64,000 nt of DNA, taken from the sequence record PV593634.1; one strand, written 5' to 3'. The position numbers and the translations under genes are program-made. Shown here in pieces: positions 16,405-48,978 of the stretch. Position 1 is the first letter of the stretch. Each line of letters starts with the position of its first letter. The notes beneath the pieces were generated by a model. That model saw nothing but the letters and a program-made list of their open reading frames with translations. It was not told the DNA's origin and made no database searches.

Positions 16405-16429
16405 CAGACCTACATTATCTAGGTGTAAA
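16405..16429 (+). promoter_or_regulatory. Putative phage early promoter, copy 1
   Basis: CAGACCTACATTATCTAGGTGTAAA matches the recurring 25-bp motif and precedes the 16534-20939 cluster. Confidence 0.7.
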
Positions 16430-16533
16430 CTGTTCAGTTAATTTAGAGGTCTTTAATAAGCATACTTGCTTAGAGAACAATTAAACGTTCTAAATCATTT
16501 AACCTTTCATTTACTAACTTAGAGATCAACAAC

Positions 16534-16923
16534 ATGTTTAAGAAACTTTGGAATATCATTGTTAAAGCTTGTAAAGTAATACGTGGTGCATTTAATAAAG
16601 CTGCGGTTGAAAACTTCCTGCCTTATAAAGGTGAACCTGAATTCGAACCTGTTACTAGAGAGACTGTGTTCTCTTGGACCAAATGGTTCTCTGGCAAATA
16701 CCGTATGACTGGAAAGGACTATGTGTTCAAACAGTTCAACCTTCAGTCTCGCCGTAATACCATCTCTGCTTGTGTTATCACTGGCCTGGCTATCTGTGCT
16801 CTTGTGATGACAATTGGCAATGCACCTTCTATGGCTTTAAGATTCGCATTGATGGCTTTGTTCCAATACATCGGTAACGAAATCCAGAATGCACGTATTG
16901 CTCGTGACGCTTTCTTCGCTTAA
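16534..16923 (+). CDS. Hypothetical membrane protein (129 aa)
   Basis: ORF with C-terminal hydrophobic segments; first gene after the promoter motif. Confidence 0.75.
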   Translation: MFKKLWNIIVKACKVIRGAFNKAAVENFLPYKGEPEFEPVTRETVFSWTKWFSGKYRMTGKDYVFKQFNLQSRRNTISACVITGLAICALVMTIGNAPSMALRFALMALFQYIGNEIQNARIARDAFFA

Positions 16924-16999
16924 TCAAACTCAGACAACTGGGTTTGCTGAATACCATTAAACTAGTGTTATACTTAAACCCATTTAATAAGGAACTATC

Positions 17000-17467
17000 A
17001 TGAAAACTTTATTCTCCGTACTGTTGCTGTCCACCGCTGTTCTGTCTTTCGCTGCTGAAGCTTCTGTCGATCCGTTGGACGCAGTTGGTGATCGTTGTGC
17101 TCCTGGCGATGTGATCTATTATGGTCAGAACCTGAAACACACCAAAGAAGTTCTGATCTGCCAGTACGGTACAAACGTATTTTACTCTTTTGGTAAAGTA
17201 GGTCAGAAAGCTGAGCTGGATATCAAATCCGATAACATAGAAACGACAGCCGTAGTCGTTACTGACGATGTTCAGTCTTCTGAGTACCTGTACGTTCCAA
17301 ATGGTAACATCACTTACCGCGTTGGTTATACCGGTGATTTGATACAGCCTGGTAAATCCAATGACGCTGTTTATGTATTCTCTTCCAAGCAAGAGAAACC
17401 AATCGCTGTAATCGAATTGGATCCGAACACTGTGATAAACGGTATCCGCAATAGCTTCGTTCAATAA
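17000..17467 (+). CDS. Putative exported/periplasmic protein (155 aa)
   Basis: AAGGAA SD. Sec-type signal peptide MKTLFSVLLLSTAVLSFA-AEA and two Cys in the mature part. Confidence 0.8.
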   Translation: MKTLFSVLLLSTAVLSFAAEASVDPLDAVGDRCAPGDVIYYGQNLKHTKEVLICQYGTNVFYSFGKVGQKAELDIKSDNIETTAVVVTDDVQSSEYLYVPNGNITYRVGYTGDLIQPGKSNDAVYVFSSKQEKPIAVIELDPNTVINGIRNSFVQ

Positions 17468-17478
17468 GGAATAAACAA

Positions 17479-17838
17479 ATGGCTCATTACTTAGAAATAC
17501 ACACCGCACCTAAAACAATTACACAGTACGCTAAAGTTCTGGACTTCTGTGCTGATGGTTTAAACGAACAACTGACTAAAGTGTTTGGTATCACTCGTTG
17601 TCCGTTCAACGACATCTTCCGTCAGTTCTTTGACGTTCCCTCAACAGAGTGGGACGCGCATTACCACGTGTTGGATGATAACAGTGTCATGTACTTGATT
17701 AAAGATCTTGAACATGAACGCGCAGTCGCCGATTGGGCTGATAAAGAAATGATGACCAGCGCTATCGAAATGTTGAAGAATATCCTGGACGTTATCAATA
17801 CCGCTGAAGTATCCTACTTGATTAGCTGGAGTAAATAA
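17479..17838 (+). CDS. Hypothetical protein (119 aa)
   Basis: AAGGAA SD; tight operon packing. Confidence 0.75.
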   Translation: MAHYLEIHTAPKTITQYAKVLDFCADGLNEQLTKVFGITRCPFNDIFRQFFDVPSTEWDAHYHVLDDNSVMYLIKDLEHERAVADWADKEMMTSAIEMLKNILDVINTAEVSYLISWSK

Positions 17839-18062
17839 TGGCAAAGATAACCATTGAGTTAAATCCTGATGTTCATCCAGTACCATCTATCGAGATCGAC
17901 AGTAATGATATTCTCTGGATGTCAGGTAAAGCGTACTTGCCTGGATGTAATGTAACGACCAAGAATCGTGGTGTATTGAAGTCCACCGAAGACGTTACAA
18001 CCATTCGTGCTAAAATCGATAAAGCCATTTTCGACGATAACGAACCAAGACAAGGAATCTAA
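17838..18062 (+). CDS. Small protein with an FlbD-like beta domain
   Basis: TAATG overlap. IEIDSNDILWM...VTTKNRGVLKSTEDVTTIRAKI. Confidence 0.65.
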   Translation: MAKITIELNPDVHPVPSIEIDSNDILWMSGKAYLPGCNVTTKNRGVLKSTEDVTTIRAKIDKAIFDDNEPRQGI

Positions 18063-18063
18063 A

Positions 18064-18465
18064 ATGGAAGTGTACCTGAACTTAGATGTGCCTGAGCATC
18101 ACGATAAGTCGTATATGCCACGTGCTATTCGCGAACTGTATTATGGGCATTCCAACGATGCACTGTTGTCGTTGATCAAGTCCTACGGCTGTCCTCACTC
18201 TGGTGGTCAACACAAACTACACTTCACCGGCAAACGTGCCGATGTAGTTGCGTGGCTCGATCTGTTCCTGGAACGTTTCCCTCAAACTAAACCTGAGATC
18301 GACGCTCTTAAGAAGCGGATTCATAATGCCTTTGTTTACAAAACCGGGTGTAACTCTAATGGCGATTTGCGTTTGGAGTTAAAGTCGTTAGTTCGTCAAC
18401 ACGGTTATAATGGTGAGATCATTTTAAGATCTTGGTTCTGGACTCCTGAATGGGAAGAAATCTAA
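18064..18465 (+). CDS. Hypothetical protein (start MEVYLN)
   Basis: ATG at 18064, after AAGGAA and directly after the previous stop. Confidence 0.7.
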   Translation: MEVYLNLDVPEHHDKSYMPRAIRELYYGHSNDALLSLIKSYGCPHSGGQHKLHFTGKRADVVAWLDLFLERFPQTKPEIDALKKRIHNAFVYKTGCNSNGDLRLELKSLVRQHGYNGEIILRSWFWTPEWEEI

Positions 18466-18743
18466 TGCTAAATCATATTGTTAAACTTAAAGTAGCTTTA
18501 CATTGCCCTGGTATTGCGAACCAACTGCAAGGCACCATCACTGTGGATCCACGCGAAATCAAACGCCTGGAAGAAGTGAACGATAAAGTATTCATCGTTA
18601 TGAATGATGGTGAGCGTTTCTGTTCAGATGAAAATCTGGGCTGTGTTCAGTATGATATTCGCAGGGCTTTTGAAAAGATTGCTGAGTATGAAACTGAACG
18701 CGAGATCGAACGCATGAATCGCGAACTGGATGGGAAGAACTAA
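18465..18743 (+). CDS. Small protein with an FlbD-like domain (start MLNHIV)
   Basis: TAATG overlap. ITVDPREIKRLEEVNDKVFIVMNDGERFCSDE. Confidence 0.7.
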   Translation: MLNHIVKLKVALHCPGIANQLQGTITVDPREIKRLEEVNDKVFIVMNDGERFCSDENLGCVQYDIRRAFEKIAEYETEREIERMNRELDGKN

Positions 18744-19136
18744 ATGAAATACGTATCTGCTTTAATCCGGGTTCTGGATGCTGAAGGTGGTCCAGCAGTT
18801 GTTGACGTAACGAAAGTCGATAGCTTCAAATGCTCAGCACCCAATCGTGTTCGCGTTTACTTGTCTGGTTGTGAAGCACCGCTTCTCATTCAGTCTAATG
18901 TTGATAAGTTCGGGGAACAGGTTAACAACCGCCGTAAGGAAATCTGGGAAGCTCAACACGCTGTTGATATCTTGAAGATCCAACTGCTTGCTGAGATTCG
19001 TGATAACACAAAGACTCAGGAATACAGCGCCGAAGAAATCGTAGCACAAATGAAGCATGCCATGTATGGCGATGGGTCCGTTGTGTTACCAATGGTAACT
19101 GGTGAAGTTAAAACTGATTCACCTAAGGGGTTCTGA
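18744..19136 (+). CDS. Protein with an N-terminal FlbD-like domain (130 aa)
   Basis: Abuts the previous stop. AVVDVTKVDSF...VRVYLSG..LLIQSNVDKFGEQV. Confidence 0.7.
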   Translation: MKYVSALIRVLDAEGGPAVVDVTKVDSFKCSAPNRVRVYLSGCEAPLLIQSNVDKFGEQVNNRRKEIWEAQHAVDILKIQLLAEIRDNTKTQEYSAEEIVAQMKHAMYGDGSVVLPMVTGEVKTDSPKGF

Positions 19137-19534
19137 TGAAACATTCAATTACTTTTGAGACCGAAGATGGTTTCATTGATATCCCGATAAAGGATATTCG
19201 CAATACAACGTTGGAAGGAACTAAGATATTCGTTTCCACCCATCAGAATACCAAGCACCATGTGTTGGGTCGCTTCAAAGACATCGTCGGTGAGATTCGT
19301 GACGCACATACTTATCAACCTGAAGAGTTCTACGTGTGTATCGAATCTCTACGTGAGACATCTTGGCGCGGTGAATTAGGAAAAGAATACACCCGTCGGG
19401 CGATCATCCCAAAAGCGAATCTGCAGAAGGTCGTGGATGACAGTAATGGCGCCATGGTTTATCTCAGAGAAGGAGCTGTGATGTTTACTAAGGAAAGTCC
19501 CGAGGCGTTCCTTAAGTCATTGAGAACTCTGTAA
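19136..19534 (+). CDS. Protein with two FlbD-like domains (132 aa)
   Basis: TGATG overlap. IDIPIKDIRN... and AIIPKANLQKV...MVYLREGAVMFTKESPEAFL. Confidence 0.7.
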   Translation: MKHSITFETEDGFIDIPIKDIRNTTLEGTKIFVSTHQNTKHHVLGRFKDIVGEIRDAHTYQPEEFYVCIESLRETSWRGELGKEYTRRAIIPKANLQKVVDDSNGAMVYLREGAVMFTKESPEAFLKSLRTL

Positions 19535-19696
19535 ATGCAAAAGCAATCTAGGGGTGTGAGTAGAAGGAATCTGCTAATCTTCATGTTTGGTAAGACCTTC
19601 AGCCCCAAGGTTGCCATTGAAGATAAAGTAGTAGATTTGATAATCGGTAAAGAAGCGAGTTTGCTTATCAACTTTAGAAAGAGGATACTGAAATGA
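19535..19696 (+). CDS. 53-aa small ORF below the track cutoff
   Basis: ATG immediately after the upstream TAA; its TGA overlaps the next ATG (ATGA). MQKQSRGVSRRNLLIFMFGKTFSPKVAIEDKVVDLIIGKEASLLINFRKRILK. Confidence 0.6.
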   Translation: MQKQSRGVSRRNLLIFMFGKTFSPKVAIEDKVVDLIIGKEASLLINFRKRILK

Positions 19697-20466
19697 AAAA
19701 CAAAAAGATCGATTGGTTTGTGTACGATAAATACTGGCGTCAATGGTCTCGTGTGGTTTCACGAGGTGGTGGTAACTTTGATCACGAAATCTCTATCCCA
19801 TTGCACCCGATAAATGATGGTCCGAATATAGATAGTGAGAAAGAGTGGGAAGAGATTGCTAAGGTCCAGATCAAACGTTTTGATGTTCGCTATCGCGCAT
19901 CTAGTAAAGATCAGATTTACACTCACGAACTTCCTCAGGAAGTTTATGACCGCCTGGTTATGAAAGTGGGTAAAGCTAAAGCTGATGTGATCATGCATGC
20001 CGACATCTTATCCCTGGTCGATTGGTCTCGTTATGTCGAGTATGGTGACACATACGTTCCATTCGAGATGTGCCGTTATGAACAATCCTGGTATTTCCAT
20101 TCCATCAAACGTGAAGGGGTTGAATCAGTATCGGCTCTGATGGATGCTCAACGCTTCTGTAAGTTGGTACAAATGGAACCCGCTAAGGAATGTATCCTGG
20201 CCGGTGGTTTGTATCACGAACATGAAGGTAAATGCGTAACACTGTTTGCCACTATTGATCCAGTTCGTGAGATCGTAGCTATCGATGTAATGATCAGTAC
20301 GGATCACTTTGATTCTCGTACCCGATTCACTAACAATATACGGGGCGAATGGAACAACTCCATTTATGATCATCTCCTGTTCTCCGATCATGTCTCCGTG
20401 GAGACTCACGAGCAAGCTCTCGAAATGATCAACCGTATCAAAACTAACTTAATCATTTACTCTTAA
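19693..20466 (+). CDS. Hypothetical protein (257 aa)
   Basis: GAGGA SD; long ORF in the operon. Confidence 0.8.
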   Translation: MKNKKIDWFVYDKYWRQWSRVVSRGGGNFDHEISIPLHPINDGPNIDSEKEWEEIAKVQIKRFDVRYRASSKDQIYTHELPQEVYDRLVMKVGKAKADVIMHADILSLVDWSRYVEYGDTYVPFEMCRYEQSWYFHSIKREGVESVSALMDAQRFCKLVQMEPAKECILAGGLYHEHEGKCVTLFATIDPVREIVAIDVMISTDHFDSRTRFTNNIRGEWNNSIYDHLLFSDHVSVETHEQALEMINRIKTNLIIYS

Positions 20467-20483
20467 TTAGAAGGAAGTACAAA

Positions 20484-20939
20484 GTGGAGCTTAAATTTTT
20501 ATTCGGTACTGTTCGTGTCATCAAAAAGAATGACGAAGATACGATAGAAAATGCCACGCTGAAAGACTGCATCCTGATGACTCGTAAAACGGATTTGATT
20601 CAGCATTCTGAAATGGCATCTGCTACATCGTTATTTCCACTAACGGGTGGGTTTATTAAGAGCATCCGTGACCGTAGAAAAATGCATTGGTTTGGTGAAT
20701 CTGTATCTTGCAGAGTTCGGACCGATGAAAGTATGGAACCGTTGTACACTAAGTTGGTTACAACCGAGAACTACTGGAAAGCTGAACTGATTCGTCTGGG
20801 CAGAACTTACACCATCTTCATGGTATGTCCTGTGGATTATGAACCAAGTTGTCAGTTATCAGAACTCAAATGGCAACCATGTTCACACCTTGATCTTAAA
20901 GACATTGTAGAAGCTGAGCAGAAGACCAACGTTTACTAA
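20484..20939 (+). CDS. Hypothetical protein (151 aa)
   Basis: AAGGAA SD and GTG start. Confidence 0.7.
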   Translation: MELKFLFGTVRVIKKNDEDTIENATLKDCILMTRKTDLIQHSEMASATSLFPLTGGFIKSIRDRRKMHWFGESVSCRVRTDESMEPLYTKLVTTENYWKAELIRLGRTYTIFMVCPVDYEPSCQLSELKWQPCSHLDLKDIVEAEQKTNVY

Positions 20940-20944
20940 ACAAA

Positions 20945-20986
20945 CATAATCCCCTACCCCTCCTTTATGGAGTGGGTAGGGTTATG
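20945..20986. terminator. Dispersed palindrome family copy A (bidirectional terminator)
   Basis: CCCCTACCCCTCC-TTTAT-GGAGTGGGTAGGG flanked by CATAA and TTATG, between convergent genes. Confidence 0.75.
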
Positions 20987-21003
20987 AATTACTTTAATTA
21001 TTT

Positions 21004-21609
21004 TTAGACGATTGCTTTAAGGTCTTCAATGAAGTAAAGGTTACCAGTGAACTTATCGATGTTGATAGAAGTGATGGTAAACTCACCAGAAGCTTTGGTT
21101 GTAGGATCCATAGCTGGCGCTGTGGTTACACCAATCTGATCCCAATAGATGTCGTTCATCAAACGCATAACTACATCTGGATTAGCATCAGCTGAGTTCA
21201 GAACAATGGCATGCTTACCAACCATGTTCACATACACTACACCTGGACCTTGTGTTCCGTTCTTAACTGCAAGAGTTAATTCTTCAACCGTACCGTAGGT
21301 GGTTACAACCACACCGAATTCGTTAAAGATAGGAACAATGGTGATCTTCTCTACTTCAATATCAGCACGGAAGAAACCGGTTTTACGAGATAAGAAACAG
21401 CAGAGGACAATTCCACTACCTAAAGTAACTGGAGGTTCGATCATCACATCTTCGTGACGTAAACCATCGTAACGCTGTTTAGCGAGTGTCAATTCGTCGC
21501 TTGGTCCTTCCGCTTCTAGTTTGGCGATACGATCAACCATAAACTTTCGGGCAGATAAGAACACCGGATCATTTATCTTTTTACTGTTAACGCCTGAGAC
21601 TGTGATCAT
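21004..21609 (-). CDS. Stand-alone paralog of the N-terminal domain of the 3381-aa fibre (201 aa)
   Basis: KKINDPVFLSARKFMVDRIAKLEAEGPSDELTLAKQRY..PV..G...RKTGF aligns with KKCINDPLYTPVDRFLKERIAKLEIEGPADELELARERY..PV..DG..RKTGF. Confidence 0.85.
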   Translation of the reverse strand: MITVSGVNSKKINDPVFLSARKFMVDRIAKLEAEGPSDELTLAKQRYDGLRHEDVMIEPPVTLGSGIVLCCFLSRKTGFFRADIEVEKITIVPIFNEFGVVVTTYGTVEELTLAVKNGTQGPGVVYVNMVGKHAIVLNSADANPDVVMRLMNDIYWDQIGVTTAPAMDPTTKASGEFTITSINIDKFTGNLYFIEDLKAIV

Positions 21610-21665
21610 AATGGGCTACCTGTTAATAAAACTATTAGAGTATTTTGACTCGTTCCAAAAGATTC

Positions 21666-21721
21666 AAATGACTTATTACCCGTGTGTATAAAAATACAGA
21701 CAGATATTATTAAAGTGTACA
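21666..21721 (+). promoter_or_regulatory. Tandem putative early promoters (variant at 21666-21690, consensus copy at 21697-21721)
   Basis: AAATGACTTATTACCCGTGTGTATA and CAGACAGATATTATTAAAGTGTACA both carry TATTA-N5-GTGTA. Confidence 0.7.
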
Positions 21722-21751
21722 GTTAATGTGTATCTTAATGAGGAAATAAAG

Positions 21752-22114
21752 ATGGATAGTAAACCTAAACTGATTGTACACGCCATGGCCGAGGAACGTG
21801 TAAAGTATCTGAATCGGCATCTGGTTAATCTAGATACTTGTGTATTAACGATGAAGGAGGTACCTTGGTGGAAACTTTATAAGTTCCTGAAGTACCGTTT
21901 AGCCATCTTGTCGGTAACCATGTGCATACGACCCAAGCTACAAAAACTTATTCTGGATTACACTATCTATACGGCCAATCCTCCAGACTTCACCATCGGG
22001 TATATTAATATGCGATTCACTGAATTTCTGGAAACGCATAAAAAATTCCTAATCAATCTAAATAAACTTTATTTAGTAAAGGAAGATAAGTTTTTAGAAA
22101 AACTGAATAAGTAA
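21752..22114 (+). CDS. Hypothetical protein (start MDSKPKL)
   Basis: GAGGAAA SD before ATG 21752. Confidence 0.7.
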   Translation: MDSKPKLIVHAMAEERVKYLNRHLVNLDTCVLTMKEVPWWKLYKFLKYRLAILSVTMCIRPKLQKLILDYTIYTANPPDFTIGYINMRFTEFLETHKKFLINLNKLYLVKEDKFLEKLNK

Positions 22115-22141
22115 TGTTCTGTTCTAAATTGGAGAAATGAA

Positions 22142-22540
22142 ATGAAAGAAACCGAAGCTCAATATCTAGCAAGACTCGCTTATCATTCAGCTCACGATCT
22201 GTTAGACTGTATCGATGATGCGGTTAAACAAATGATCGAAAGTCGTAATTGGAAAACCTATCTGACCACGTTGGATCTGTTTACTGTATTACATCTGAAA
22301 GCTCGAATGAATACTTTTAAGAAAGCTGTTGGTAACAACTTCGAGTTGTATATCTACAACGGTGATAAATACAACGACCGTGTTCTAGAGTACATCGTTA
22401 ATTTCTATAACGATCTTATTCGTGAATTCCGTAAGGACATTATTAATCTATTCAACTTCTGTCGTAAAGACGTACCGCACCTTACCGGTAACGGTGAGGA
22501 ATCTTTCTTAGCATTAACATACGGTGGTTATATCAGATAA
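22142..22540 (+). CDS. Hypothetical protein (132 aa), possible paralog of the preceding gene
   Basis: GGAGA SD. Shares a Y.IY...D..(I/L).YI...F.E......INL pattern with 21752. Confidence 0.7.
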   Translation: MKETEAQYLARLAYHSAHDLLDCIDDAVKQMIESRNWKTYLTTLDLFTVLHLKARMNTFKKAVGNNFELYIYNGDKYNDRVLEYIVNFYNDLIREFRKDIINLFNFCRKDVPHLTGNGEESFLALTYGGYIR

Positions 22541-22554
22541 CCCAGGAGCCCGCC

Positions 22555-23094
22555 ATGAATACAGTTTTCTGTGCAGACGGACATGTGGATCACTTAGCTT
22601 CTTGCAAAAGAAGGGGATTTGAAACAGTAGAAAAATTCCAAGAGTATTACGCTGATACTTGGTGTTCTAAAGTTGGTAAGAATACTTTAGTGTATTGTGT
22701 CGGGGATATGGCTTTGTACCATTCCGGCTTGGTGTTCATGAAGAAACTTCCTGGGCGCAAGATCCTGGTGATGGGTAACCACGATCCCGAACGTGAAAAC
22801 AATACACGCGATTTAATTGAAGTGTATGATGAACTGTACGGTGTATGGAAGCACAAAGGCTCTCCTTTATATATCGCACACGTTCCTTCCCATCCGTCAC
22901 AACTTCGTGGTCGTTTAATGGTGCACGGGCATTTACATGGAGATGTCATTCAGGATGAACGTTATATCAACGTATCTTGGGAACAACTTCCTGGTCATGC
23001 TCCAGTATCGATCGAAGATATTGTATCGGGTAAATTCAGAACCTGGAGAAAACCTGAACATGGAACAATCCATTTACCGTCTAAGCAAGTATAG
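22555..23094 (+). CDS. Calcineurin-like metallophosphoesterase
   Basis: Motifs ADGH (DxH), VGD, MGNHD, IAH and HGHLH. Confidence 0.9.
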   Translation: MNTVFCADGHVDHLASCKRRGFETVEKFQEYYADTWCSKVGKNTLVYCVGDMALYHSGLVFMKKLPGRKILVMGNHDPERENNTRDLIEVYDELYGVWKHKGSPLYIAHVPSHPSQLRGRLMVHGHLHGDVIQDERYINVSWEQLPGHAPVSIEDIVSGKFRTWRKPEHGTIHLPSKQV

Positions 23095-23287
23095 TAATTA
23101 CGCATTTGTAATTGCTTTCACAGTTTTAGCCATGCTGCTTGGGTTCGATTATTTCAAACCCATCGAAATGACTAAGTTTATTGTTGTTGCCCTATTCCCT
23201 TTCCAGGTGGCGCTGGTAATCTTCGACATCATACTTTACTTTGTACGTCGACAAATAGAAAGGAAACGTCGTGACTCCGTCTCATAA
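23060..23287 (+). CDS. Small two-TM membrane protein (start MEQSIY)
   Basis: GGAGA SD before ATG 23060; two hydrophobic segments. Confidence 0.65.
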   Translation: MEQSIYRLSKYSNYAFVIAFTVLAMLLGFDYFKPIEMTKFIVVALFPFQVALVIFDIILYFVRRQIERKRRDSVS

Positions 23288-23486
23288 CCTTATCGTGTTC
23301 TTTTGCATTATGGTTGTTCTTTATCTTATCTACGTTGGGTCGAAGCTAGTCGACTGTTACATGCCGAGATATCGTAAAGAACAGGTCGTCAAAATTATTA
23401 AGGTCAACGGTACCATTATTCTGACCGCTTCTATCTTTACCCTCGTTATCAATGGCTGTGTTGCAATCTATAAGGTATTCTCATGA
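23271..23486 (+). CDS. Small two-TM membrane protein (71 aa)
   Basis: AAGGAA SD, GTG start, two hydrophobic segments, ATGA overlap with thyA. Confidence 0.65.
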   Translation: MTPSHNLIVFFCIMVVLYLIYVGSKLVDCYMPRYRKEQVVKIIKVNGTIILTASIFTLVINGCVAIYKVFS

Positions 23487-24673
23487 AAAAGTTAAATAAG
23501 TATGAACACTGGTATATGGAACAGATGAATAACATCATCGAGAACGGTCAACGTCGTGGCGACCGTACCGGTACTGGTGTTATCTCTCTACCTGATCTGG
23601 AGTATCGTCATGACCTGCGTGAATCTTACCCAGTTCTGTGGTCTCGCTTCTTTAACCTTCATATGCCTATCATCGAGATTTTGTGGATGATGTCGGGTAG
23701 CTCCAATATCCTGGAACTGAAAGAGAAAGGTTGTCCGTTCTGGAATGGCTTTGCGGTTAAAGGTGACAAGATTGTAGCGACTCAGTTGTCTTTAACTGAA
23801 CGTCTTAAATTGTTAGCCGCTAAACAGGGTGTTCCTTACGGTAAGGTTCTCCAGGTATTCGGTAGTGAGAAACCTGAAGATATTAAACTGGAACTGGATC
23901 TGAAAGAGATCCCCGATACCCAAGATATGCTGGTTGCTAAAGACGGTGACCTAGGTCCAGTATACGGTCACCAGTGGCGTTATTGGCCAAACCCTGATGG
24001 ATCTACCTTCGACCAGTTAACGTACGCTCTGGAAGCTTTACGTAGCGATCCTAACAACCGTCGCATCGTAGTCAACTGTTGGAACCCAAGTTACCTGCCG
24101 GATCCTAAGAAATCCCCAGCAGAGAACGCTGCTAACGGTAAGATGGCTTTGACTCCGTGCCACTTCAGCTTTGGTTTCTATACCTGGGAAATTCCTTTCC
24201 ATGAACGTGCTGAAATGTTGAAAGGTCTGTGTGCTCCAGAAGAATGGCGTAGCATCTATCCCATCACAAGTGGATCTGAAGCAATTGCTAAGATCGAAGC
24301 ACTGTGTGGTAAGTACGATATCCCTCGCTACTTCCTGGACCTGAAATACGTGATGCGTTCAAACGACTGGATCCTAGGTCAGCCAGCCAATATGAACATG
24401 TACTCTGCCATGTTAATGGTGTTTGCGAAAGAACTGAACATGGTTCCTCGCTACGTCAAATACACTGGCTGGGATTGTCATGTTTACGCCAACCATCTGG
24501 AAGGTGCCGAAGAACTAAACCGTCGTTGGGCTACTGGTGAACATAAGTACTCTAATGTGCATGTTAACCTGGATACCGAAGCACTTGGTCTGTTTAACTA
24601 CAGACATGATGACTTCCACGTTCCTGAAGCTTATAAGCCGCTGGACAAAATCAAATTCCCTATCGCTATCTAA
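23483..24673 (+). CDS. thyA: Thymidylate synthase with two large insertions
   Basis: DRTGTG, YGHQWR, RRIVVNCWNP, LTPCH, RSND..LG.P.N and DCHVYANH motifs. Confidence 0.95.
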   Translation: MKKLNKYEHWYMEQMNNIIENGQRRGDRTGTGVISLPDLEYRHDLRESYPVLWSRFFNLHMPIIEILWMMSGSSNILELKEKGCPFWNGFAVKGDKIVATQLSLTERLKLLAAKQGVPYGKVLQVFGSEKPEDIKLELDLKEIPDTQDMLVAKDGDLGPVYGHQWRYWPNPDGSTFDQLTYALEALRSDPNNRRIVVNCWNPSYLPDPKKSPAENAANGKMALTPCHFSFGFYTWEIPFHERAEMLKGLCAPEEWRSIYPITSGSEAIAKIEALCGKYDIPRYFLDLKYVMRSNDWILGQPANMNMYSAMLMVFAKELNMVPRYVKYTGWDCHVYANHLEGAEELNRRWATGEHKYSNVHVNLDTEALGLFNYRHDDFHVPEAYKPLDKIKFPIAI

Positions 24674-24681
24674 CTTAAATA

Positions 24682-24707
24682 ACTAGGGGTCCGAAAGGGT
24701 CCCTAGT
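24682..24707 (+). terminator. GAAA-loop hairpin after thyA with no U tail (attenuator or RNA stability element)
   Basis: ACTAGGGGTCC-GAAA-GGGTCCCTAGT, followed directly by the SD of the next gene. Confidence 0.5.
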
Positions 24708-24721
24708 AAAGGAGCTTTTAA

Positions 24722-25546
24722 ATGACTAAGCAAGAACGTGATAACATCGTAGGCGTAACTTCATTTCAAACCTTACTTCGTGGCGTTGAGGTTTTTATTG
24801 AACAGGATGGGTTAAAACCAATTGAAATCAATGGGTTGGTTACCCAACCTTTATATGACGTATTAAACATGATGACCAGAATTACGTTTGGCGTACCTTA
24901 TATTGGTAAGGATCCTCGTTTCGGTCAACAAGATTCTTTAACAGGTTTGCAGGATTGGTATAACCATGTGCGTTCTTTCGTAAATCAGGGGACTCAGTAT
25001 TATCTCCACCCAATGGAGATTACTGGCGAGTGGGATATGGAAAGCTATCGTGGATTCCAATCCATCGTCGAATGCTACCGTCAACATACTCTAAAGAAAG
25101 AAGGGATAATCCATTCCGATATCTCTCGCATCAATTATCGTATTTCCGGTATTGATACAATCATATTCTCTAGCGAAACCCAGTTAGATGATTTCCATAA
25201 GTGTGCTACCTTAGCTACAGGTGTTCAGAACATCGAACAATACCTGCCGTACATGAGAACCACTGGTTGGAAGTTTAGTGTTGGATGTACTGACGAAGGC
25301 TTCCCAGTTGGCGTTATCGCGTACAGTTTACCTAACCCGATGATGGGTAATCAAGATACAGTTATTGCCGGTATCTATGTTGCTCCCGAACATCGTGGAC
25401 GAGGTATCGGTAAAGCTTTGGTTAACGATGTGTTGACTGCATCCCAACCATATGACTATACAGTGGTGGCTAATAAGTCGGTAGGTCATGTACCAGGATG
25501 GTCGGATGTGATTAGTTTCCTTTCTCAGTTCAACGTCAAAATGTAA
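24722..25546 (+). CDS. Unknown N-terminal domain fused to a GNAT acetyltransferase
   Basis: GNAT motif A: IAGIYVAPEHRGRGIGKAL. Confidence 0.85.
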   Translation: MTKQERDNIVGVTSFQTLLRGVEVFIEQDGLKPIEINGLVTQPLYDVLNMMTRITFGVPYIGKDPRFGQQDSLTGLQDWYNHVRSFVNQGTQYYLHPMEITGEWDMESYRGFQSIVECYRQHTLKKEGIIHSDISRINYRISGIDTIIFSSETQLDDFHKCATLATGVQNIEQYLPYMRTTGWKFSVGCTDEGFPVGVIAYSLPNPMMGNQDTVIAGIYVAPEHRGRGIGKALVNDVLTASQPYDYTVVANKSVGHVPGWSDVISFLSQFNVKM

Positions 25547-25551
25547 TACAT

Positions 25552-25577
25552 CCTCCTTTACCCGAAGGTAAAGGAGG
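25552..25577. terminator. Hairpin terminator
   Basis: Perfect 11-bp stem CCTCCTTTACC/GGTAAAGGAGG with a CGAA loop (UUCG on the minus strand). Confidence 0.7.
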
Positions 25578-25602
25578 GTTCAGTTTCAGTTGTATTCTTT
25601 TT

Positions 25603-25627
25603 CAGACACATATAATTTAAGTGTAAA
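25603..25627 (+). promoter_or_regulatory. Putative early promoter copy
   Basis: CAGACACATATAATTTAAGTGTAAA, preceded by TATTCTTTTT as at 16395. Confidence 0.75.
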
Positions 25628-25684
25628 TACAATAATGTATTACAACCACCTGCAACTATTAAATTTTAGAGAAGGAATATTACC

Positions 25685-26035
25685 ATGGCTAACAACTTCG
25701 CTGCTGTAGAACACATGAACGATCGTAACGTAGAAGGCGTTTCTTATATGAAAACCGTTCTGGCTAACGTTATGGGCGTAAACACTGAATCCGAAAAAGA
25801 TAACGAGATGGGTTCAGTAGCAATGGCTGCTATCAAATCTATGGCTCGTACTGCTTTCGGTCGTCTGCCTCTGTTCCGTACTGCACAGATGGATAACGGC
25901 GTAATGACTTTCCAGGCTTTCTTCAACGACTTCGCTGAAGCTAATGACCTGAACGCACACCTGCGTGTAACTGGTGTTTGGAACGAAGCAACCCAGAACG
26001 CATTCGACATGATCGTAACTAAATTCAACGCATAA
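25685..26035 (+). CDS. Hypothetical early protein (116 aa)
   Basis: AAGGAA SD; strongly biased codons (AAC, GCT, CGT, TTC). Confidence 0.85.
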   Translation: MANNFAAVEHMNDRNVEGVSYMKTVLANVMGVNTESEKDNEMGSVAMAAIKSMARTAFGRLPLFRTAQMDNGVMTFQAFFNDFAEANDLNAHLRVTGVWNEATQNAFDMIVTKFNA

Positions 26036-26046
26036 GGAATACTAAC

Positions 26047-26304
26047 ATGAACCATTTTAAATTAGCTCGTGCTGCTGCAAAGAACCAAAAACTGGCTGCT
26101 CTGTTCACTGCTGTATTCCTGGCATTCGGTCTGGTATTCTGGCTGCTTGCAAAACTGGAAATCGCAACTGAGTTCTCCCAGTTCATCGCCACCATTATGG
26201 GTAACGTATCTTTCGGATTCCTGATTGCATATGTTATCTGCAATGTTATCCGTTACAACTCGGAAACAAAAACCCATAAAGGGTTACCTAAACGTATGCA
26301 TTAA
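26047..26304 (+). CDS. Two-TM membrane protein (85 aa)
   Basis: AAGGAA SD; two hydrophobic helices. Confidence 0.8.
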   Translation: MNHFKLARAAAKNQKLAALFTAVFLAFGLVFWLLAKLEIATEFSQFIATIMGNVSFGFLIAYVICNVIRYNSETKTHKGLPKRMH

Positions 26305-26305
26305 T

Positions 26306-26340
26306 TCCCACCTGCCCCTAGTTTTATACTAGGGGTGGGA
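26306..26340 (+). terminator. Hairpin
   Basis: CCCCTAGT-TTTAT-ACTAGGGG extended by TCCCAC/GTGGGA. Confidence 0.55.
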
Positions 26341-26372
26341 TCTTAAGCTCTATAATAATTTTTGGTATCCAT

Positions 26373-26618: not shown

Positions 26619-26631
26619 TTTGGATAAAAGA

Positions 26632-28672: not shown

Positions 28673-28679
28673 CCCAAAT

Positions 28680-28705: not shown

Positions 28706-28717
28706 TTAGGAGTTATC

Positions 28718-28837
28718 ATGGATTTATTTTCGCAATTTGCATTGTGGTGTTTAGGCGCTATTGCTACTGGTTTTGTTTGTACTCTCTTTACACGTGGTTT
28801 AACCTATTTGAAAAACAAACTGTTTAAAAAATCTTAA
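28718..28837 (+). CDS. 39-aa single-TM peptide below the track cutoff
   Basis: AGGAG SD. MDLFSQFALWCLGAIATGFVCTLFTRGLTYLKNKLFKKS. Confidence 0.65.
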   Translation: MDLFSQFALWCLGAIATGFVCTLFTRGLTYLKNKLFKKS

Positions 28838-28859
28838 ACAGATATTATTAAAGTGTTAA
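28835..28859 (+). promoter_or_regulatory. Putative early promoter copy, upstream of clpP-groEL
   Basis: TAAACAGATATTATTAAAGTGTTAA. Confidence 0.7.
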
Positions 28860-28887
28860 GGTTATCAAGTTTAATAAGGAGACTTGA

Positions 28888-32544: not shown

Positions 32545-32558
32545 GTTGGAAACTATTT

Positions 32559-32583
32559 CAGACCTATATCATCTAAGTGTAAA
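32559..32583 (+). promoter_or_regulatory. Putative early promoter copy
   Basis: CAGACCTATATCATCTAAGTGTAAA. Confidence 0.75.
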
Positions 32584-32618
32584 TACATTAACGTATTAAA
32601 CCTACTGGAGATATAGAT

Positions 32619-33940: not shown

Positions 33941-33976
33941 CTAGAGCGGGGGAAACCTCGCTCTAGATTATGTTTG
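33941..33976 (+). terminator. Terminator with a TTATG tail
   Basis: CTAGAGCGGGG-GAAA-CCTCGCTCTAG followed by ATTATGTTTG. Confidence 0.7.
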
Positions 33977-33987
33977 CCATTTGAAAA

Positions 33988-34012
33988 TGGATAGATATTA
34001 TCTATGTGTATG
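33988..34012 (+). promoter_or_regulatory. Putative early promoter copy
   Basis: TGGATAGATATTATCTATGTGTATG. Confidence 0.7.
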
Positions 34013-34040
34013 GCTTGAACAATTTAACTAAGGAGTTAAC

Positions 34041-40440: not shown

Positions 40441-42546
40441 TTAAAAGAGATCGGACATCTTACTTAATTTGAAATTCACATGATGATCGAAGTGTTCGGT
40501 ATCCAAAGCATAGCCTTCGAAGCCAATCAGTTCTTTAAGGTTAGTTGGCATGCCAGCAGCTCTTAGGTTAGCACCACCCACGTACTTAGGTAACTTACCG
40601 CCACCCAGCAGGATATCAACTTGTTCCTTAGACCATTCCATAATGTCGATAGAACGGGAAGTGATGTTCTCGGCAGAACCTGTGTCAAGGTCGAGCAGGT
40701 AAACGTAGCACTTGGCATCCTGTCCTTTACGATAGATACGAGCGATGGTCTGCTTAGTCTCGTAAGAACGGAATGGGGAGTTCATCATTATGATCTGGTT
40801 ACACATCAGTAAAGGATAACCTTCACGTAAGGTGTTAAAGGTTGTGATCAGTGGGTTAGTACCAGGGTCGTTTGCTACCTGGGAAATTACCTTATCGACT
40901 TCTGATGAGTTCTCACCACTTACAGAGATAGAGTTAATACCCTCAGCTGTGAAGTAAGTTTCCAGCTCCTTAATAACGTCAATGTAAGACGTGTAGATCG
41001 CTGTCTTCTTCTCAACTGCTGATATCATACTCGGTAAGTTAGCGTGCTTGATAATGTCGCGTACAGCTTCCATACGAGCACGAGAGAGAATGCGACCTAA
41101 TGCTTCACCACGAATCTTCAGACCCACATACTTAACCGCAGATTTAATATGACGGAAGTATTTAAGGTCATCACCTTTCAGCTCGTTCTCAATGTTCTTC
41201 TCAACGGAGTGAGCGAATTTGGACATCTCAGCATCAGTGAAGTTGTTGTATCCATTCTTCTGGAAGTAATGAACAATTTCAATGTAGCGATTTAAACGAG
41301 CCAGTTCTTTCTCATCAGTAGCAATCCATGAACGATAGGCGTTAACGAACTGATTCCAATCATCGACATAACCAGGCATCTTCTTATTATAGAAGTCTAC
41401 TCGTTCTTCAATGAAGTCCAGCATTACACTACGGATATTCTCCAGCGTGTATTTCTCTGCACCATCGAACTTAATAGGAACGATAATGGGTTCAGGTGGT
41501 TTATCCATACCGTCAACTTTGGTAATTGTAAACTTGATACGACCCAAACGGTGTGCGAGCATCTGGTTAAGGAAGTCGTTATCACGACCATACATTTTCA
41601 GGAAGTCGGTCTGTACTTCTTTATCAAAGAACTTATCGATAACGGTGAACAGAGCAAAGGTTTCACGACCTTGAGCCTTGATAGGTGTACCGGATTGGAA
41701 CAGTACATCAGAGACATACTTGTTGGTACAGATATCAATCAGACCCTGAGTCTGTTGTGATTTGTGCTCATTATAGTTGTGAGATTCATCAACGATAACT
41801 TTAAGAGGTTCTTTACCTTGTTTAGACAACACTGTTAACAACCCGTCATATTCACGACCACGCAGTGTGTCTTTGTGAATGATGAAGTACTGTGCATCGG
41901 TGTGGTTCATTGGGTCAGTGCCATCAAGGGACGTCCAACACTTACGACCTTTCTTGAAGTACTCGTTCTCAATGGCATTCTTCCACGGGTTATTCACCAG
42001 GTGTTTAGGTACGACGATAATAGTCTTGCCCGTTGAGATCATCTCAGCCCATACCAAAGAGGTATAGGTCTTACCGCTACCTGGCTCAGCATCAAGTAAA
42101 CAACCACGTAACTGATAACCGTATTTTATACGAGAGTAATCTTCTAAGAACTCACGTTGATCAGGGAATGGTTTAAAGTTAAATGCGGCTAAAGCTTTAT
42201 CGACGTTGTATGGAGGATATTGTTGGAACGTTGACTCGATCCACGTTTTCTGTTTGATCTCTCCATAAAGCTGGTTGTACTTATACATACCAACACGATA
42301 ACGGTCTACTTGGCGCTTATTCTTGTTGGACGTAAAGTGATCGAGAATCCAAGCTAATTCAACCATAAAGAACTGGTGGATCTTGAATCGTCTGTTATTC
42401 AGTTTAATTATCATGCGGTTAAAGATAACCGATGTTCCGAAATTAGATCTTAAGTCTAATTCGAACGCGTTTAAATTTATACCGGTGATGACATAGTAAG
42501 AACCGACCTTCTCCACAGTAGGCGAAAAGTTAAAAAATTCCATCAT
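40441..42546 (-). CDS. SNF2-family (SF2) helicase/ATPase
   Basis: DAEPGSGKT, VDESHN, SGTP and QTIARIYRKGQ. Confidence 0.92.
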   Translation of the reverse strand: MMEFFNFSPTVEKVGSYYVITGINLNAFELDLRSNFGTSVIFNRMIIKLNNRRFKIHQFFMVELAWILDHFTSNKNKRQVDRYRVGMYKYNQLYGEIKQKTWIESTFQQYPPYNVDKALAAFNFKPFPDQREFLEDYSRIKYGYQLRGCLLDAEPGSGKTYTSLVWAEMISTGKTIIVVPKHLVNNPWKNAIENEYFKKGRKCWTSLDGTDPMNHTDAQYFIIHKDTLRGREYDGLLTVLSKQGKEPLKVIVDESHNYNEHKSQQTQGLIDICTNKYVSDVLFQSGTPIKAQGRETFALFTVIDKFFDKEVQTDFLKMYGRDNDFLNQMLAHRLGRIKFTITKVDGMDKPPEPIIVPIKFDGAEKYTLENIRSVMLDFIEERVDFYNKKMPGYVDDWNQFVNAYRSWIATDEKELARLNRYIEIVHYFQKNGYNNFTDAEMSKFAHSVEKNIENELKGDDLKYFRHIKSAVKYVGLKIRGEALGRILSRARMEAVRDIIKHANLPSMISAVEKKTAIYTSYIDVIKELETYFTAEGINSISVSGENSSEVDKVISQVANDPGTNPLITTFNTLREGYPLLMCNQIIMMNSPFRSYETKQTIARIYRKGQDAKCYVYLLDLDTGSAENITSRSIDIMEWSKEQVDILLGGGKLPKYVGGANLRAAGMPTNLKELIGFEGYALDTEHFDHHVNFKLSKMSDLF

Positions 42547-42563
42547 AGTTAAGGACCTTAGAA

Positions 42564-43673
42564 ATGAGTGATAAATTAGAATTCATTAACGACAATCATT
42601 ACAACCTGTTCGCTTTCGCTACACTGAATCAGTTAGCGGTATCACCGGCATCAAAATTTGAAGTCGAACATCAGGAATATCGTGATCGTTACAAAGTATC
42701 GTTGGGTGGGTATGCCTGGCTGGTCAAAGCTGACTTCATTGGTAAGTTCTGGTTAGCTCTGGATAAATTCGATGCGGAATGCGATGCCTTCATCGATCAT
42801 GGTAATGGTTGTGCTAATGAAAACGTTAAGATGACAGCAACAGGTCCTGTCAATGAACTCACCTATAGTTATACCGATGTTCCATTTGGTCAACTGACTG
42901 GTGAAGACTTCATCAACATCGATGACCGTATGCAAGGTCTGTTAACTGCAGCCGCTCAGGTAGTCCGTGAGTCTGCCGAAATCATTAACCGTGAACAAGC
43001 ACTGGTAATGAAAGATACCAATGTAGTTAAAGACTTCGATGGTATTCTGACGTTTGATACCAAGTTGGGTAAAGACTTCGGTGTCCAGCTGTGCTTTGAC
43101 AAAATCAGCCCGATCAAAGAAGGTAACGATGACGTTTGGATTGAACGTACTCCAATTACTCAGGGTGACGGTAACAAATACTTACGTGGATCTTTCTCCA
43201 AAGTACAGAACCGTCTGAAACATCTGAACGGTATCGTCCAGGACTTCTTCCAAGCTAAAGCTGTACAGAAGAACGAATACCTGGTTGAGTATGCAGAGAT
43301 GTTGGTTAACAACACCCTGGTACACATGTACTTGAACCAGAACATCATCTACATCTCTTTCGGTGGTGAAGACAAGTGGGGGACCTTCTCCAAAGATACA
43401 CCTAACAACGTTGAGTGTATGAAGTATCTGGATGCTGAAATCGAAAACATCATTAAGATGCTTGAAGGTATTGAGAAAACCGAAGGTGTAGATGTCTACT
43501 CTATGGATATCGATACGTTCGCCGTGTTCGGTCGTGACTTCGACAACCGTGTGGTAACTCCTGCTCTGCAAGGTTACGTTCAACCGCTGCTGGATAAATA
43601 CTCCAAAGGCTTTGAACAAACACTGTCAACTCGAATGTCCATGATTGACAACCAGCATTTCTTTAAAGCATAA
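42564..43673 (+). CDS. Hypothetical protein (369 aa)
   Basis: AAGGA SD; long ORF with phage-typical codon usage. Confidence 0.8.
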   Translation: MSDKLEFINDNHYNLFAFATLNQLAVSPASKFEVEHQEYRDRYKVSLGGYAWLVKADFIGKFWLALDKFDAECDAFIDHGNGCANENVKMTATGPVNELTYSYTDVPFGQLTGEDFINIDDRMQGLLTAAAQVVRESAEIINREQALVMKDTNVVKDFDGILTFDTKLGKDFGVQLCFDKISPIKEGNDDVWIERTPITQGDGNKYLRGSFSKVQNRLKHLNGIVQDFFQAKAVQKNEYLVEYAEMLVNNTLVHMYLNQNIIYISFGGEDKWGTFSKDTPNNVECMKYLDAEIENIIKMLEGIEKTEGVDVYSMDIDTFAVFGRDFDNRVVTPALQGYVQPLLDKYSKGFEQTLSTRMSMIDNQHFFKA

Positions 43674-47067: not shown

Positions 47068-47531
47068 TGGAACTCAAAGATCCTATTAACTCCTTGATCG
47101 AGTTTCTGTCAAAAGAACTTCATCAGGAGATCGTTTATAACGACGATAGCTCGCAGTTCTGGAAGAAAGCACAGATACACATCTTCGATAACAGTATTGC
47201 TTCCATTCGCGAAAGCATTAACTCGTTAAGTGAAGCTATAGGTGAAGACCCGGATTTGTTTAACTACTTCTCCTCCTTTACCTTCCGTGTATTCTCCCAG
47301 CCATTTGCACGACCAGCTATCAAGAACTTCTCTGAAGGCTTTGATGAGATTGGTATGGACGTCTTCTTCCGTGAAGCTCTATCAATTACGTCTAAAGACC
47401 TGACCTTAGTCGAACAGTTCCTTCTGTTCTTATCTGTACATCGTAATCAAATTCAATTGATGATGATTGAAGCAGAAGAGTTCAAAGCGGACATGGCTAA
47501 GAAAGCAGCAAGAGAAGCTAAGCGGAGATAA
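47067..47531 (+). CDS. Hypothetical protein (154 aa)
   Basis: TAATG overlap. Confidence 0.75.
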   Translation: MELKDPINSLIEFLSKELHQEIVYNDDSSQFWKKAQIHIFDNSIASIRESINSLSEAIGEDPDLFNYFSSFTFRVFSQPFARPAIKNFSEGFDEIGMDVFFREALSITSKDLTLVEQFLLFLSVHRNQIQLMMIEAEEFKADMAKKAAREAKRR

Positions 47532-47537
47532 TGAATA

Positions 47538-48266
47538 ATGGATATTACTATCTACACAGAGATGGATTCATTATTCGATGTGAGGCGAGGAATTATTACC
47601 AAGGTTGCTCGTGAGTCTGGCAATAACAAGTTTGAGTGGGATAAGAACTTCAAAGAGATTTATGCTCGACGTCGTTTCGATTACTTCCACCAACCTGAGC
47701 TGGGGATTACGGACGAAGCTTATCAAGCTCGTTACGCTAAGCGCTCCCTGGCTGACTTCGCTGATCATCAAGAAGTATTCGTCTACCCAAGTAAACTGAT
47801 TCACAACATCTTCAAGATCGTTCGTGAGATAGAGTTTGGTGTTGGACAGATTATCTCGGCATCAACTTTCGAATTAACAGTTAACCTATATCCTTATGTT
47901 CTGGAACAAGAACACATCGATGAGTTGAATTCTGTTATTCGTGGAGCTGTTCCGTTTAACATCAGTCTATCATTTGTAAACATTCCGTATGATAAAATTA
48001 CTCCGGTGATTTTACATGCCTATCAGTACTGCTTCATTTACGACTTCCTGACTTCTAAAGACCGGAAGACGTACTGGGAAAATTATATCCCAGCGGGAAA
48101 CACGAACACACGTTTCATTGTCCCGGATGTGCTACTGAACAAAGAACTACCCGATGAAATGAGAACCGAAGAGGCGATCACTTTAATTGGAAAACTGAAT
48201 GTAACTCAAGGTGGTAAAATAACCTGGGTCCCATATCCCAAAACCATATTCGATTATAAAGAATAA
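47538..48266 (+). CDS. Conserved hypothetical protein (242 aa)
   Basis: N-terminal IYTEMDSLFD.R pattern (HAD-like start); operon-packed. Confidence 0.7.
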   Translation: MDITIYTEMDSLFDVRRGIITKVARESGNNKFEWDKNFKEIYARRRFDYFHQPELGITDEAYQARYAKRSLADFADHQEVFVYPSKLIHNIFKIVREIEFGVGQIISASTFELTVNLYPYVLEQEHIDELNSVIRGAVPFNISLSFVNIPYDKITPVILHAYQYCFIYDFLTSKDRKTYWENYIPAGNTNTRFIVPDVLLNKELPDEMRTEEAITLIGKLNVTQGGKITWVPYPKTIFDYKE

Positions 48267-48272
48267 GGTCAG

Positions 48273-48299
48273 CCTAGGAGCCCCGCAAGGGCTCCTAGG
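48273..48299. terminator. Bidirectional terminator
   Basis: CCTAGGAGCCC-CGCAA-GGGCTCCTAGG, between convergent genes. Confidence 0.75.
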
Positions 48300-48314
48300 A
48301 CTGTTTGCTGTCTG

Positions 48315-48917
48315 TTAGGATTCTGGATCCCAATCGGTGTCTTCATCTGGATCAGGTGCTTCGGAAGTATTAATGTCATGTTCGTCGTCGTCACCGAAGC
48401 TTGCTTCGATTTCTTTGGTGTCAACAACTTGGTGACCTTGCATAATCTCTTCAGGTCTGATCTCGTCGTCTGGATCTTCTATATGGATAATAGGAGCCAG
48501 TGGATCAAGTACGAAAGAGCTGGAACCGTAAGTAGGCATGATGATCTTGCCGTTTGATACTTCTGTTAATGCGTTAACAAAGGTAGCAAAGTTAGCTCGG
48601 TTGTCTTCCAATTCTCTGTCCTTGAGTCTCTCTTTACGATCGTCACGGATAGTCTTTTCAATCTGAGCTAAGATGGTATTAATGGAATCCATCAGCTTCG
48701 GGTTGTTAGGTTTGTTAATGATCGTCTGCATCGCAATATCAAGTAACAGGTTACGTTGACGTTGAACAGTATTGATCAGGGTGCTTTCAGCTTCCTTGTC
48801 TTGAGGACCTTTAAGTAACTTATTTATCTCTGCAATCAAGGCGTCCTTATCTTGCACCGTTTTCAATTTATCATCAGACGGTGGGGCTGGATGAATCTCA
48901 TCAGCGTGATCGAACAT
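48315..48917 (-). CDS. Hypothetical protein (200 aa) with an acidic C-terminus
   Basis: AAGGAAG SD; helical coiled-coil-like core. Confidence 0.75.
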   Translation of the reverse strand: MFDHADEIHPAPPSDDKLKTVQDKDALIAEINKLLKGPQDKEAESTLINTVQRQRNLLLDIAMQTIINKPNNPKLMDSINTILAQIEKTIRDDRKERLKDRELEDNRANFATFVNALTEVSNGKIIMPTYGSSSFVLDPLAPIIHIEDPDDEIRPEEIMQGHQVVDTKEIEASFGDDDEHDINTSEAPDPDEDTDWDPES

Positions 48918-48953
48918 AACTGGCTTCCTTATTCTTTAGTAACTATTAAATTA

Positions 48954-48978
48954 TAGACAGATATTATCAAAGTAGATA
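48954..48978 (+). promoter_or_regulatory. Putative early promoter copy (variant)
   Basis: TAGACAGATATTATCAAAGTAGATA. Confidence 0.6.

Follow-up and report, generated by a model that had tools for sequence, protein, structure and literature searches.

A dispersed motif of Shewanella phage SXP01 that probably serves as the early promoter of the virion RNA polymerase

Known early promoters and the place of the SXP01 motif

Every jumbo phage that encodes RNA polymerases (RNAPs) has an early motif that can be detected bioinformatically, and such motifs have been confirmed wherever transcripts were profiled (PMC7598289). Here we analyze a motif of this kind in Shewanella phage SXP01, several copies of which lie in a 64,000-nucleotide stretch of the genome (hereafter the window, positions 186001-250000 of PV593634.1; the genome is 269,939 bp long, and positions are those of the window unless marked as genomic). 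An earlier examination of the letters and open reading frames (ORFs) of this stretch, hereafter the sequence-only reading, had proposed that a 25-bp, phage-specific motif heads plus-strand accessory units and is probably a distinct promoter of the virion RNAP (vRNAP). We consider it probable, at roughly 85%, that the motif is the early promoter of SXP01 and is read by the vRNAP. The identity of the polymerase, the start site and the early timing are inferred, and are supported by homology, promoter geometry, gene context and conservation across the clade.

Early promoters of this type have been mapped in relatives. In Bacillus phage AR9, the early consensus of the vRNAP, mapped by differential RNA sequencing (dRNA-seq) and primer extension, is AAATATATATTAT-(6N)-G(+1), and early transcripts of phages phiKZ and phiR1-37 also start 6 nt downstream of the conserved element (PMC5312081). 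The early promoters of phiKZ combine an extended -10 box with a T-rich motif upstream of -19 (PMC8244752); they number 28-32 copies, and the development of this phage is independent of the host RNAP (PMC8244752, PMC10914365). The promoters of the second, non-virion RNAP (nvRNAP) are short and weak and escape bioinformatic detection: phiKZ has TATG as well as a weak AT-rich element at -24 in its middle promoters, and AR9 has AACA-N6-TA/G (PMC7598289).

The closest counterparts of the SXP01 motif are already in print. The consensus TBYAWWWWWTTTCARRYAKATATTATYWAAGTGWA was reported for Klebsiella phage N1M2 from 31 locations, and the same source tabulates the consensus BSHAWWWWWTTTYARRYAKATATTATYWWADTG for Pseudomonas phage OBP beside those of 201phi2-1, EL and phiKZ (TATATTAC), and relays the judgment of the OBP authors (Cornelissen et al. 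2012) that the motif is an early, phage-specific promoter (PMC7058600). The SXP01 consensus matches those of N1M2 and OBP base for base, from the upstream TBYA through the W5-TTT tract and CARRYAKATATTATY to the GTG, and the three phages are alike in copy number (27-31), in strand and in the positions of the motif relative to syntenic genes. They differ in that the host genus of SXP01 is Shewanella and that its start region, GTGTAAA, is slightly stronger. Thus, the motif is not a distinct promoter, the consensus having appeared in print as the predicted early promoter of OBP and N1M2, and it is better described as clade-specific than as phage-specific, given that it is common to the whole OBP-like clade.

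Comparison with the mapped systems reveals a shared architecture with different upstream elements. SXP01 and AR9 have in common the ATATTAT block, the 6-nt spacer and the initiating G (a predicted start in SXP01), the presence of tens of copies heading known or predicted early operons, and an encoded, virion-packaged multisubunit RNAP. In contrast, AR9 has an A/T-rich upstream extension where SXP01 has CAGAC, a T-tract and an A at -29, and also differs in its uracil-containing DNA, its distant host and its 41 sites. Similarly, the phiKZ promoter, with its TATATTAC core, resembles that of SXP01 in architecture, copy number, leading-strand bias and the apparent driving of chimallin and other early genes, whereas its core ends in C instead of the invariant T of SXP01, and CAGAC and GTGTA are absent from it.

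The instance in SXP01 is unreported, and the paper describing the SXP01 genome makes no mention of promoters, RNA polymerases or transcripts; the kind of element, however, is known, and the motif itself is in print for N1M2 and OBP. Being expected in every RNAP-encoding jumbo phage and published for relatives, the motif opens no new question. What it offers is a usable transcription map of SXP01, a proposed therapy phage for aquaculture, with 28 predicted early start sites and about 100 putative early ORFs, many of which are absent from the GenBank annotation.

Copies and anatomy of the motif

A weight matrix covering motif positions -10 to 25 was scanned along both strands of the entire 269,939-bp genome, a scan of the kind that the sequence-only reading had proposed, and identified 28 sites scoring 26-42 bits. 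The score distribution is bimodal, the 28 sites being followed by scores of 16.5 and 13.9 bits and then by values of at most 3.4 bits. Ten second-order Markov shuffles of the genome reach a maximum of about 11 bits, and the best minus-strand score (10.7 bits) reflects the partial palindrome of a plus-strand site. Each of the 28 sites lies in intergenic DNA on the plus strand, in agreement with the proposal that the copies precede genes rather than being scattered inside them. With genes delineated by a rough codon-usage caller, and not by a curated annotation, the conserved G at motif position 21 lies 20-114 nt 5' of a plus-strand start codon throughout the genome, except at two sites that represent gene-calling artefacts: at these the crude caller missed the first ORF, and for the one at genome position 147482 the GenBank start at 147550 restores a distance of 48 nt.

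Within the window, the scan yields exactly seven sites, and these are the copies that had been listed as starting at 16405, 21697, 25603, 28835, 32559, 33988 and 48954. A placement 30-130 nt before an ATG had been proposed, and the motif starts indeed lie 53-129 nt, and the predicted start sites 33-109 nt, upstream of the respective ATG. The seven copies are as follows.

16393..16432, plus strand: predicted early promoter copy 1 (motif 16405-16429), 41.3 bits; predicted start G 16425; N1M2 orthologue at 166695, after nrdB
21685..21724, plus strand: predicted early promoter copy 2 (motif 21697-21721), 39.0 bits; predicted start G 21717; ATG 21752; N1M2 orthologue at 173386
25591..25630, plus strand: predicted early promoter copy 3 (motif 25603-25627), 39.5 bits; predicted start G 25623; ATG 25685; N1M2 orthologue at 177686
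28823..28862, plus strand: predicted early promoter copy 4 (motif 28835-28859), 39.4 bits; predicted start G 28855; ATG 28888; N1M2 orthologue at 179908, 5' of the Clp protease gene
32547..32586, plus strand: predicted early promoter copy 5 (motif 32559-32583), 38.9 bits; predicted start G 32579; ATG 32619; N1M2 orthologue at 183897
33976..34015, plus strand: predicted early promoter copy 6 (motif 33988-34012), 29.0 bits; predicted start G 34008; ATG 34041; N1M2 orthologue at 185536
48942..48981, plus strand: predicted early promoter copy 7 (motif 48954-48978), 34.8 bits; predicted start A 48974 or G 48975; ATG 49029

Copy 1 heads a unit of 11 ORFs (16534-20939) that is terminated at a minus-strand gene. 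The unit of copy 2 holds genes for a phosphatase and thymidylate synthase, that of copy 3 a dihydrofolate reductase gene, and that of copy 4 a ClpP-like gene, a small ORF and the GroEL gene. Copy 5 is located immediately 3' of the thymidine kinase stop codon, and copy 7, which has the deviant start region GTAGATA, heads a unit (49029-51175) that also ends at a minus-strand gene.

The 25-bp motif originally delineated is a real core, but the element is longer. An additional invariant A occupies motif position -8, 9 nt 5' of the first base of the 25-bp version, and is followed by a T-rich tract; the fuller motif reads TnTA-W5-TTT-CAGACAGATATTATCTAAGTGTAAA with the core ATATTAT-N6-G, and the consensus of the alignment of the 28 sites (alignment A1) is TnTATTnAnTTTCAGACAGATATTATCTAAGTGTAAA. 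Across these sites, A8, A10, T11, A13 and T14 are invariant, with T20 and G21 nearly so; the A-Y-A-T-H-A-T block is invariant, and a G follows it at a distance of 6 nt in 26 of the 28 copies. A T-rich region upstream of approximately -19 is present as well, in the form of the consensus TTT at motif positions -3 to 0 (approximately -24 to -21). The 25-nt core contributes about 26 bits of information, to which the upstream element adds several more. The predicted leaders start with GUAAA or GUAUA and contain a Shine-Dalgarno word, for example UUUAGAGG or AAGGA.

In about half of the copies, part of the core forms a palindrome (AGATA-T-TATCT), as could be the case if the element were not a promoter at all but the binding site of a phage DNA-binding protein (such as a repressor or a factor for partition or packaging) or a repeat that recombination has dispersed. 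The palindrome, however, is not conserved, ATTATT variants being common, and neither explanation sits well with the strict single orientation, the fixed distance of 20-114 nt to a co-oriented start codon equipped with a Shine-Dalgarno sequence, the position after terminators, or the match to mapped promoters in relatives. We therefore regard a non-promoter function as extremely improbable.

The length of the element, about 36 bp, and its information content appear unusual for the early promoter of a jumbo-phage vRNAP. Because of the invariant A near -29, the CAGAC block and the deviant start regions that are kept at probable orthologues in SXP01, Yubaba and OBP, one may speculate that the vRNAP of the OBP clade, or a specificity subunit packaged with it, contacts the upstream duplex DNA in a sequence-specific manner, an idea that we consider rather unlikely on present evidence. 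To our knowledge, such contacts with upstream duplex DNA are not known for the vRNAPs of phiKZ or AR9, and we found no vRNAP-promoter complex described in the literature.

An extended leader, GTAAATACA..A..GTATTA(C)A, is common to four of the predicted early promoters (25623-25650 and 32579-32600 in the window; 11788 and 118437 in the genome) and could form a short AU-rich 5' hairpin. At 32555-32598, the shared repeat of promoter and leader is long enough to interrupt the de Bruijn contigs of related phages and to double the depth.

A variant copy that had been placed at 21666..21690 on the plus strand does not belong to the family. It scores -8.4 bits and misses two invariant positions; on the core alone it reaches 4.3 bits, a score reached by 97 other plus-strand positions. 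Moreover, it falls inside an insertion of 20 nt without counterpart in the orthologous spacer of N1M2. With the exception of this insertion, the spacer (21610-21690), which is located upstream of a minus-strand gene (21004-21609), is strongly conserved with N1M2, and its conserved part may contain the promoter of that gene.

Gene context, conservation and the polymerase predicted to read the motif

By its predicted gene complement, SXP01 is a nucleus-forming, chimallin-encoding, phiKZ-like jumbo phage of the OBP-like clade, a placement made because of the matches to PHROG profiles and the identities of a vRNAP subunit. Among the annotations of the SXP01 record are beta/beta' subunits of virion-associated and other RNA polymerases, a major head protein and the tail sheath; RNA polymerase beta families are recognized by PHROG profiles at genome positions 61287, 63370 and 113032 and at window position 60802 (E 1e-150 to 1e-209). 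Annotation and profiles together thus indicate that the split multisubunit vRNAP and nvRNAP are both encoded. The gene for the nuclear shell protein, chimallin, lies at genome 46415-48328 (PHROG 4795, E 1e-110); a comparison of this candidate with PDB sequences gave no match. The virion enzyme is represented at the end of the window.

60802..64000, plus strand: vRNAP subunit genes, 60802-62421 and 62421 onward past the window end; PHROG 2986 (RNA polymerase beta subunit), E 8e-209, and annotation

The vRNAP subunit encoded in the window shares 91% amino acid identity with that of N1M2 (virion RNAP beta' subunit), 90% with that of Serratia phage Yubaba, 88.5% with that of Pseudomonas phage OBP and about 71% with those of Aeromonas phages.

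The site at genome position 46308 is directly 5' of the chimallin gene (46415), and the site at 61244 directly 5' of the nvRNAP beta genes 61287 and 63370, whereas the nvRNAP gene 113032 is the second gene in the unit headed by the site at 111871. The genome-wide scan placed no site before any minus-strand gene or before the vRNAP genes, and none in the long blocks of structural genes. Apart from chimallin and nvRNAP, the units headed by the motif carry the genes for thymidylate synthase, dihydrofolate reductase (DHFR) and GroEL and the ClpP-like gene, and thymidine kinase adjoins; the motif is thus not confined to plus-strand accessory units, as had been supposed, but also heads core early genes genome-wide. 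Under a conservative delineation, in which a unit stops at the next promoter, at a minus-strand gene or at an intergenic terminator, the predicted regulon comprises about 103 ORFs and about 71 kb.

Because the geometry ATATTAT-N6-G equals that of the mapped early promoters of AR9 and phiKZ, and because the motif heads the chimallin and nvRNAP operons and avoids the structural and vRNAP modules, we assign it to the vRNAP. This part of the sequence-only reading is supported further by the presence of both polymerases among the encoded proteins. The nvRNAP genes lie behind the motif and, therefore, the motif must be read by a polymerase already available when infection begins, which in this family is the virion enzyme.

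The same observation bears on the possibility that the nvRNAP, perhaps together with an accessory factor, reads the motif as a middle-class promoter in place of the virion enzyme. The class of a promoter is not directly readable from its sequence, and some of the units headed by the motif hold annotated virion structural genes (for example, 50084-51175 in the window and 42398-42820 in the genome), both of which would be compatible with middle expression. However, three of the four annotated nvRNAP genes are found in motif-headed units without an intervening terminator-like hairpin, so that the nvRNAP would be unable to start its own expression. Furthermore, the known nvRNAP promoters are, as noted above, short, weak and bioinformatically undetectable, whereas the geometry of the SXP01 motif fits that of mapped vRNAP promoters, and a search for k-mers enriched in the 94 other upstream regions, aimed at a second (middle or late) motif, returned only T-runs and Shine-Dalgarno-like words. 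Taken together, these considerations make recognition by the nvRNAP improbable.

To assess conservation, genomes of other phages were scanned with a model (R1) built from the sequences of the 28 SXP01 sites. The model finds 29 sites in N1M2, 28 in OBP, 27 in Yubaba, 21 in pEt-SU, 22 in Erwinia phage AH04 and 29 in Aeromonas phage LAh10, all on the plus strand; a scan of phiKZ gives none, and a scan of EL gives three weak sites on the plus strand. One promoter consensus is thus kept across a clade of jumbo phages that infect Pseudomonas, Klebsiella, Serratia, Edwardsiella, Erwinia, Aeromonas and Shewanella, and a consensus retained across host genera fits early transcription that is independent of the host.

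Single promoters, too, are kept nearly base for base between phages. In the syntenic region of N1M2, positional orthologues exist for all six window sites of the interval 16-34 kb. The first two follow nrdB and a minus-strand gene, respectively, the third and fourth precede a 351-nt ORF and the Clp gene, and the last two lie after thymidine kinase and before the next unit. The deviant GTAGATA of the copy at 48954 recurs in one Yubaba copy (L038) and one OBP copy (L027), which are probably orthologues of the SXP01 copy. Across the six orthologous promoters of SXP01 and N1M2, identity per 10-nt bin is 0.73-0.80 in the motif versus mostly 0.43-0.72 in the flanks, a weak contrast, given that the flanks themselves are coding or conserved for other reasons.

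Several points weigh against an early, vRNAP-read promoter. We found no data on transcript 5' ends, timing or rifampicin response for SXP01 or for phages of the OBP clade. The nvRNAP gene at genome position 48431 is located behind a terminator-like hairpin (approximately 48370-48395) downstream of the chimallin gene, and its early expression may require read-through or another, undetected promoter. Finally, TATTAT, at -12 to -7 relative to the conserved G, also resembles the -10 box of sigma70.

The last point raises the alternative that the motif is a strong promoter of the host sigma70-RNAP, with TATTAT as the -10 box, and that early transcription depends on the host. The copy at 33988 does pass a loose sigma70 scan, with TTGCCA-16-TATTAT, but it is the only one to do so (one of the six window sites in 16001-36000), and sigma70-like sites in that interval are fewer than in shuffled sequence (31 found versus 46 expected). 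In accord with the sequence-only reading, there is no conserved -35 element, nor is there a TG extension; the conserved upstream A/T positions lie 15 nt from TATTAT. About 30 bits are conserved at positions that sigma70 does not read, namely the A at -29, CAGAC and the GTG at the start. In addition, SXP01 is of the chimallin-encoding type, as is phiKZ, whose independence of the host RNAP is documented as cited above. Given the absence of a -35 element, the conservation of additional positions and the biology of this phage family, we set the host RNAP aside as a very improbable reader of the motif.

With the vRNAP as the preferred reader, we propose the following course of early transcription. 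The packaged multisubunit vRNAP would enter the cell together with the DNA and would recognize an element of about 36 bp that consists of five parts, namely an A at approximately -29, a T-tract at approximately -27 to -21, CAGAC at -20 to -16, A-Y-A-T-H-A-T at -13 to -7 and G-T-G at -2 to +1. The conserved G located 6 nt 3' of ATATTAT would serve as the first transcribed base. From the 28 promoters, about 28 rightward early units would be transcribed, encompassing at least about 100 ORFs and about 71 kb, and many of these units would be insulated by a terminator hairpin just 5' of the next promoter. The predicted early products include the shell protein of the phage nucleus, the nvRNAP subunits for later transcription, enzymes of nucleotide metabolism, chaperones and numerous small proteins without an assigned function.

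Terminator-like hairpins and neighbouring DNA

The suggestion that several copies follow a terminator holds for two of the seven window copies (25603 and 33988) but not for the rest; genome-wide, a strong GC-rich hairpin with a T-run is found within 60 nt upstream of 10 of the 28 sites. The two hairpins in the window are as follows.

25551..25578, plus strand: terminator-like hairpin, 12-bp stem, dG -20.2; ends 25 nt 5' of predicted promoter copy 3
33941..33966, plus strand: terminator-like hairpin, 11-bp stem (7 GC pairs), dG -20.7; ends 22 nt 5' of predicted promoter copy 6

The hairpins that precede the predicted early promoters are often alike in sequence as well, following the pattern CCCTACCTTCC-loop-GGAGGGTAGGG and then TTTAT. 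Hairpins of similar sequence are located at 25551-25578 in the window and at 8680, 37440, 73659, 81225, 111803 and 156870 in the genome, and these putative terminators constitute a dispersed family that is paired with the promoter family.

Between nrdB on the minus strand and the first predicted promoter lies a non-coding stretch of about 90 nt (16267-16356) that is 87-88% identical to unannotated DNA in Serratia phages Yubaba and Sureiya and whose N1M2 counterpart is likewise well conserved. A CACC-GAAA-GGTG hairpin and a G-rich run occur in it, and it matches no tRNA or Rfam family, scans for which gave no matches anywhere in the window. This stretch may represent a leader or promoter region of nrdB, or a small RNA.

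GenBank record PV593634.1 lists 193 coding sequences (CDS) in 270 kb, compared with about 260-284 ORFs obtained by rough codon-usage calling. Unannotated small plus-strand ORFs are common in the predicted early units, for example at 16534-16923, 17479-18062, 18465-19534, 26047-26304 and 27301-27786, and N1M2 has annotated genes where these small ORFs of SXP01 remain unannotated.

DNA of SXP01 or of a nearly identical phage occurs in 24 public sequencing runs, mostly small runs and metagenomes. The contigs of four runs that were examined show no transcript ends. Among these, the one clear RNA sequencing run shows scattered, low-depth coverage of pieces of the phage that is uninformative with respect to 5' ends. 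Eighteen public runs share 49-74% of sampled 31-nt words with positions 25000-34500 of the window, and in two small runs that were examined, the relatives are about 98-99% identical to SXP01. The runs with SXP01-like DNA include amphibian and invertebrate metagenomes as well as several small runs labelled as other organisms, which suggests a wide distribution of close SXP01 relatives in samples associated with animals.

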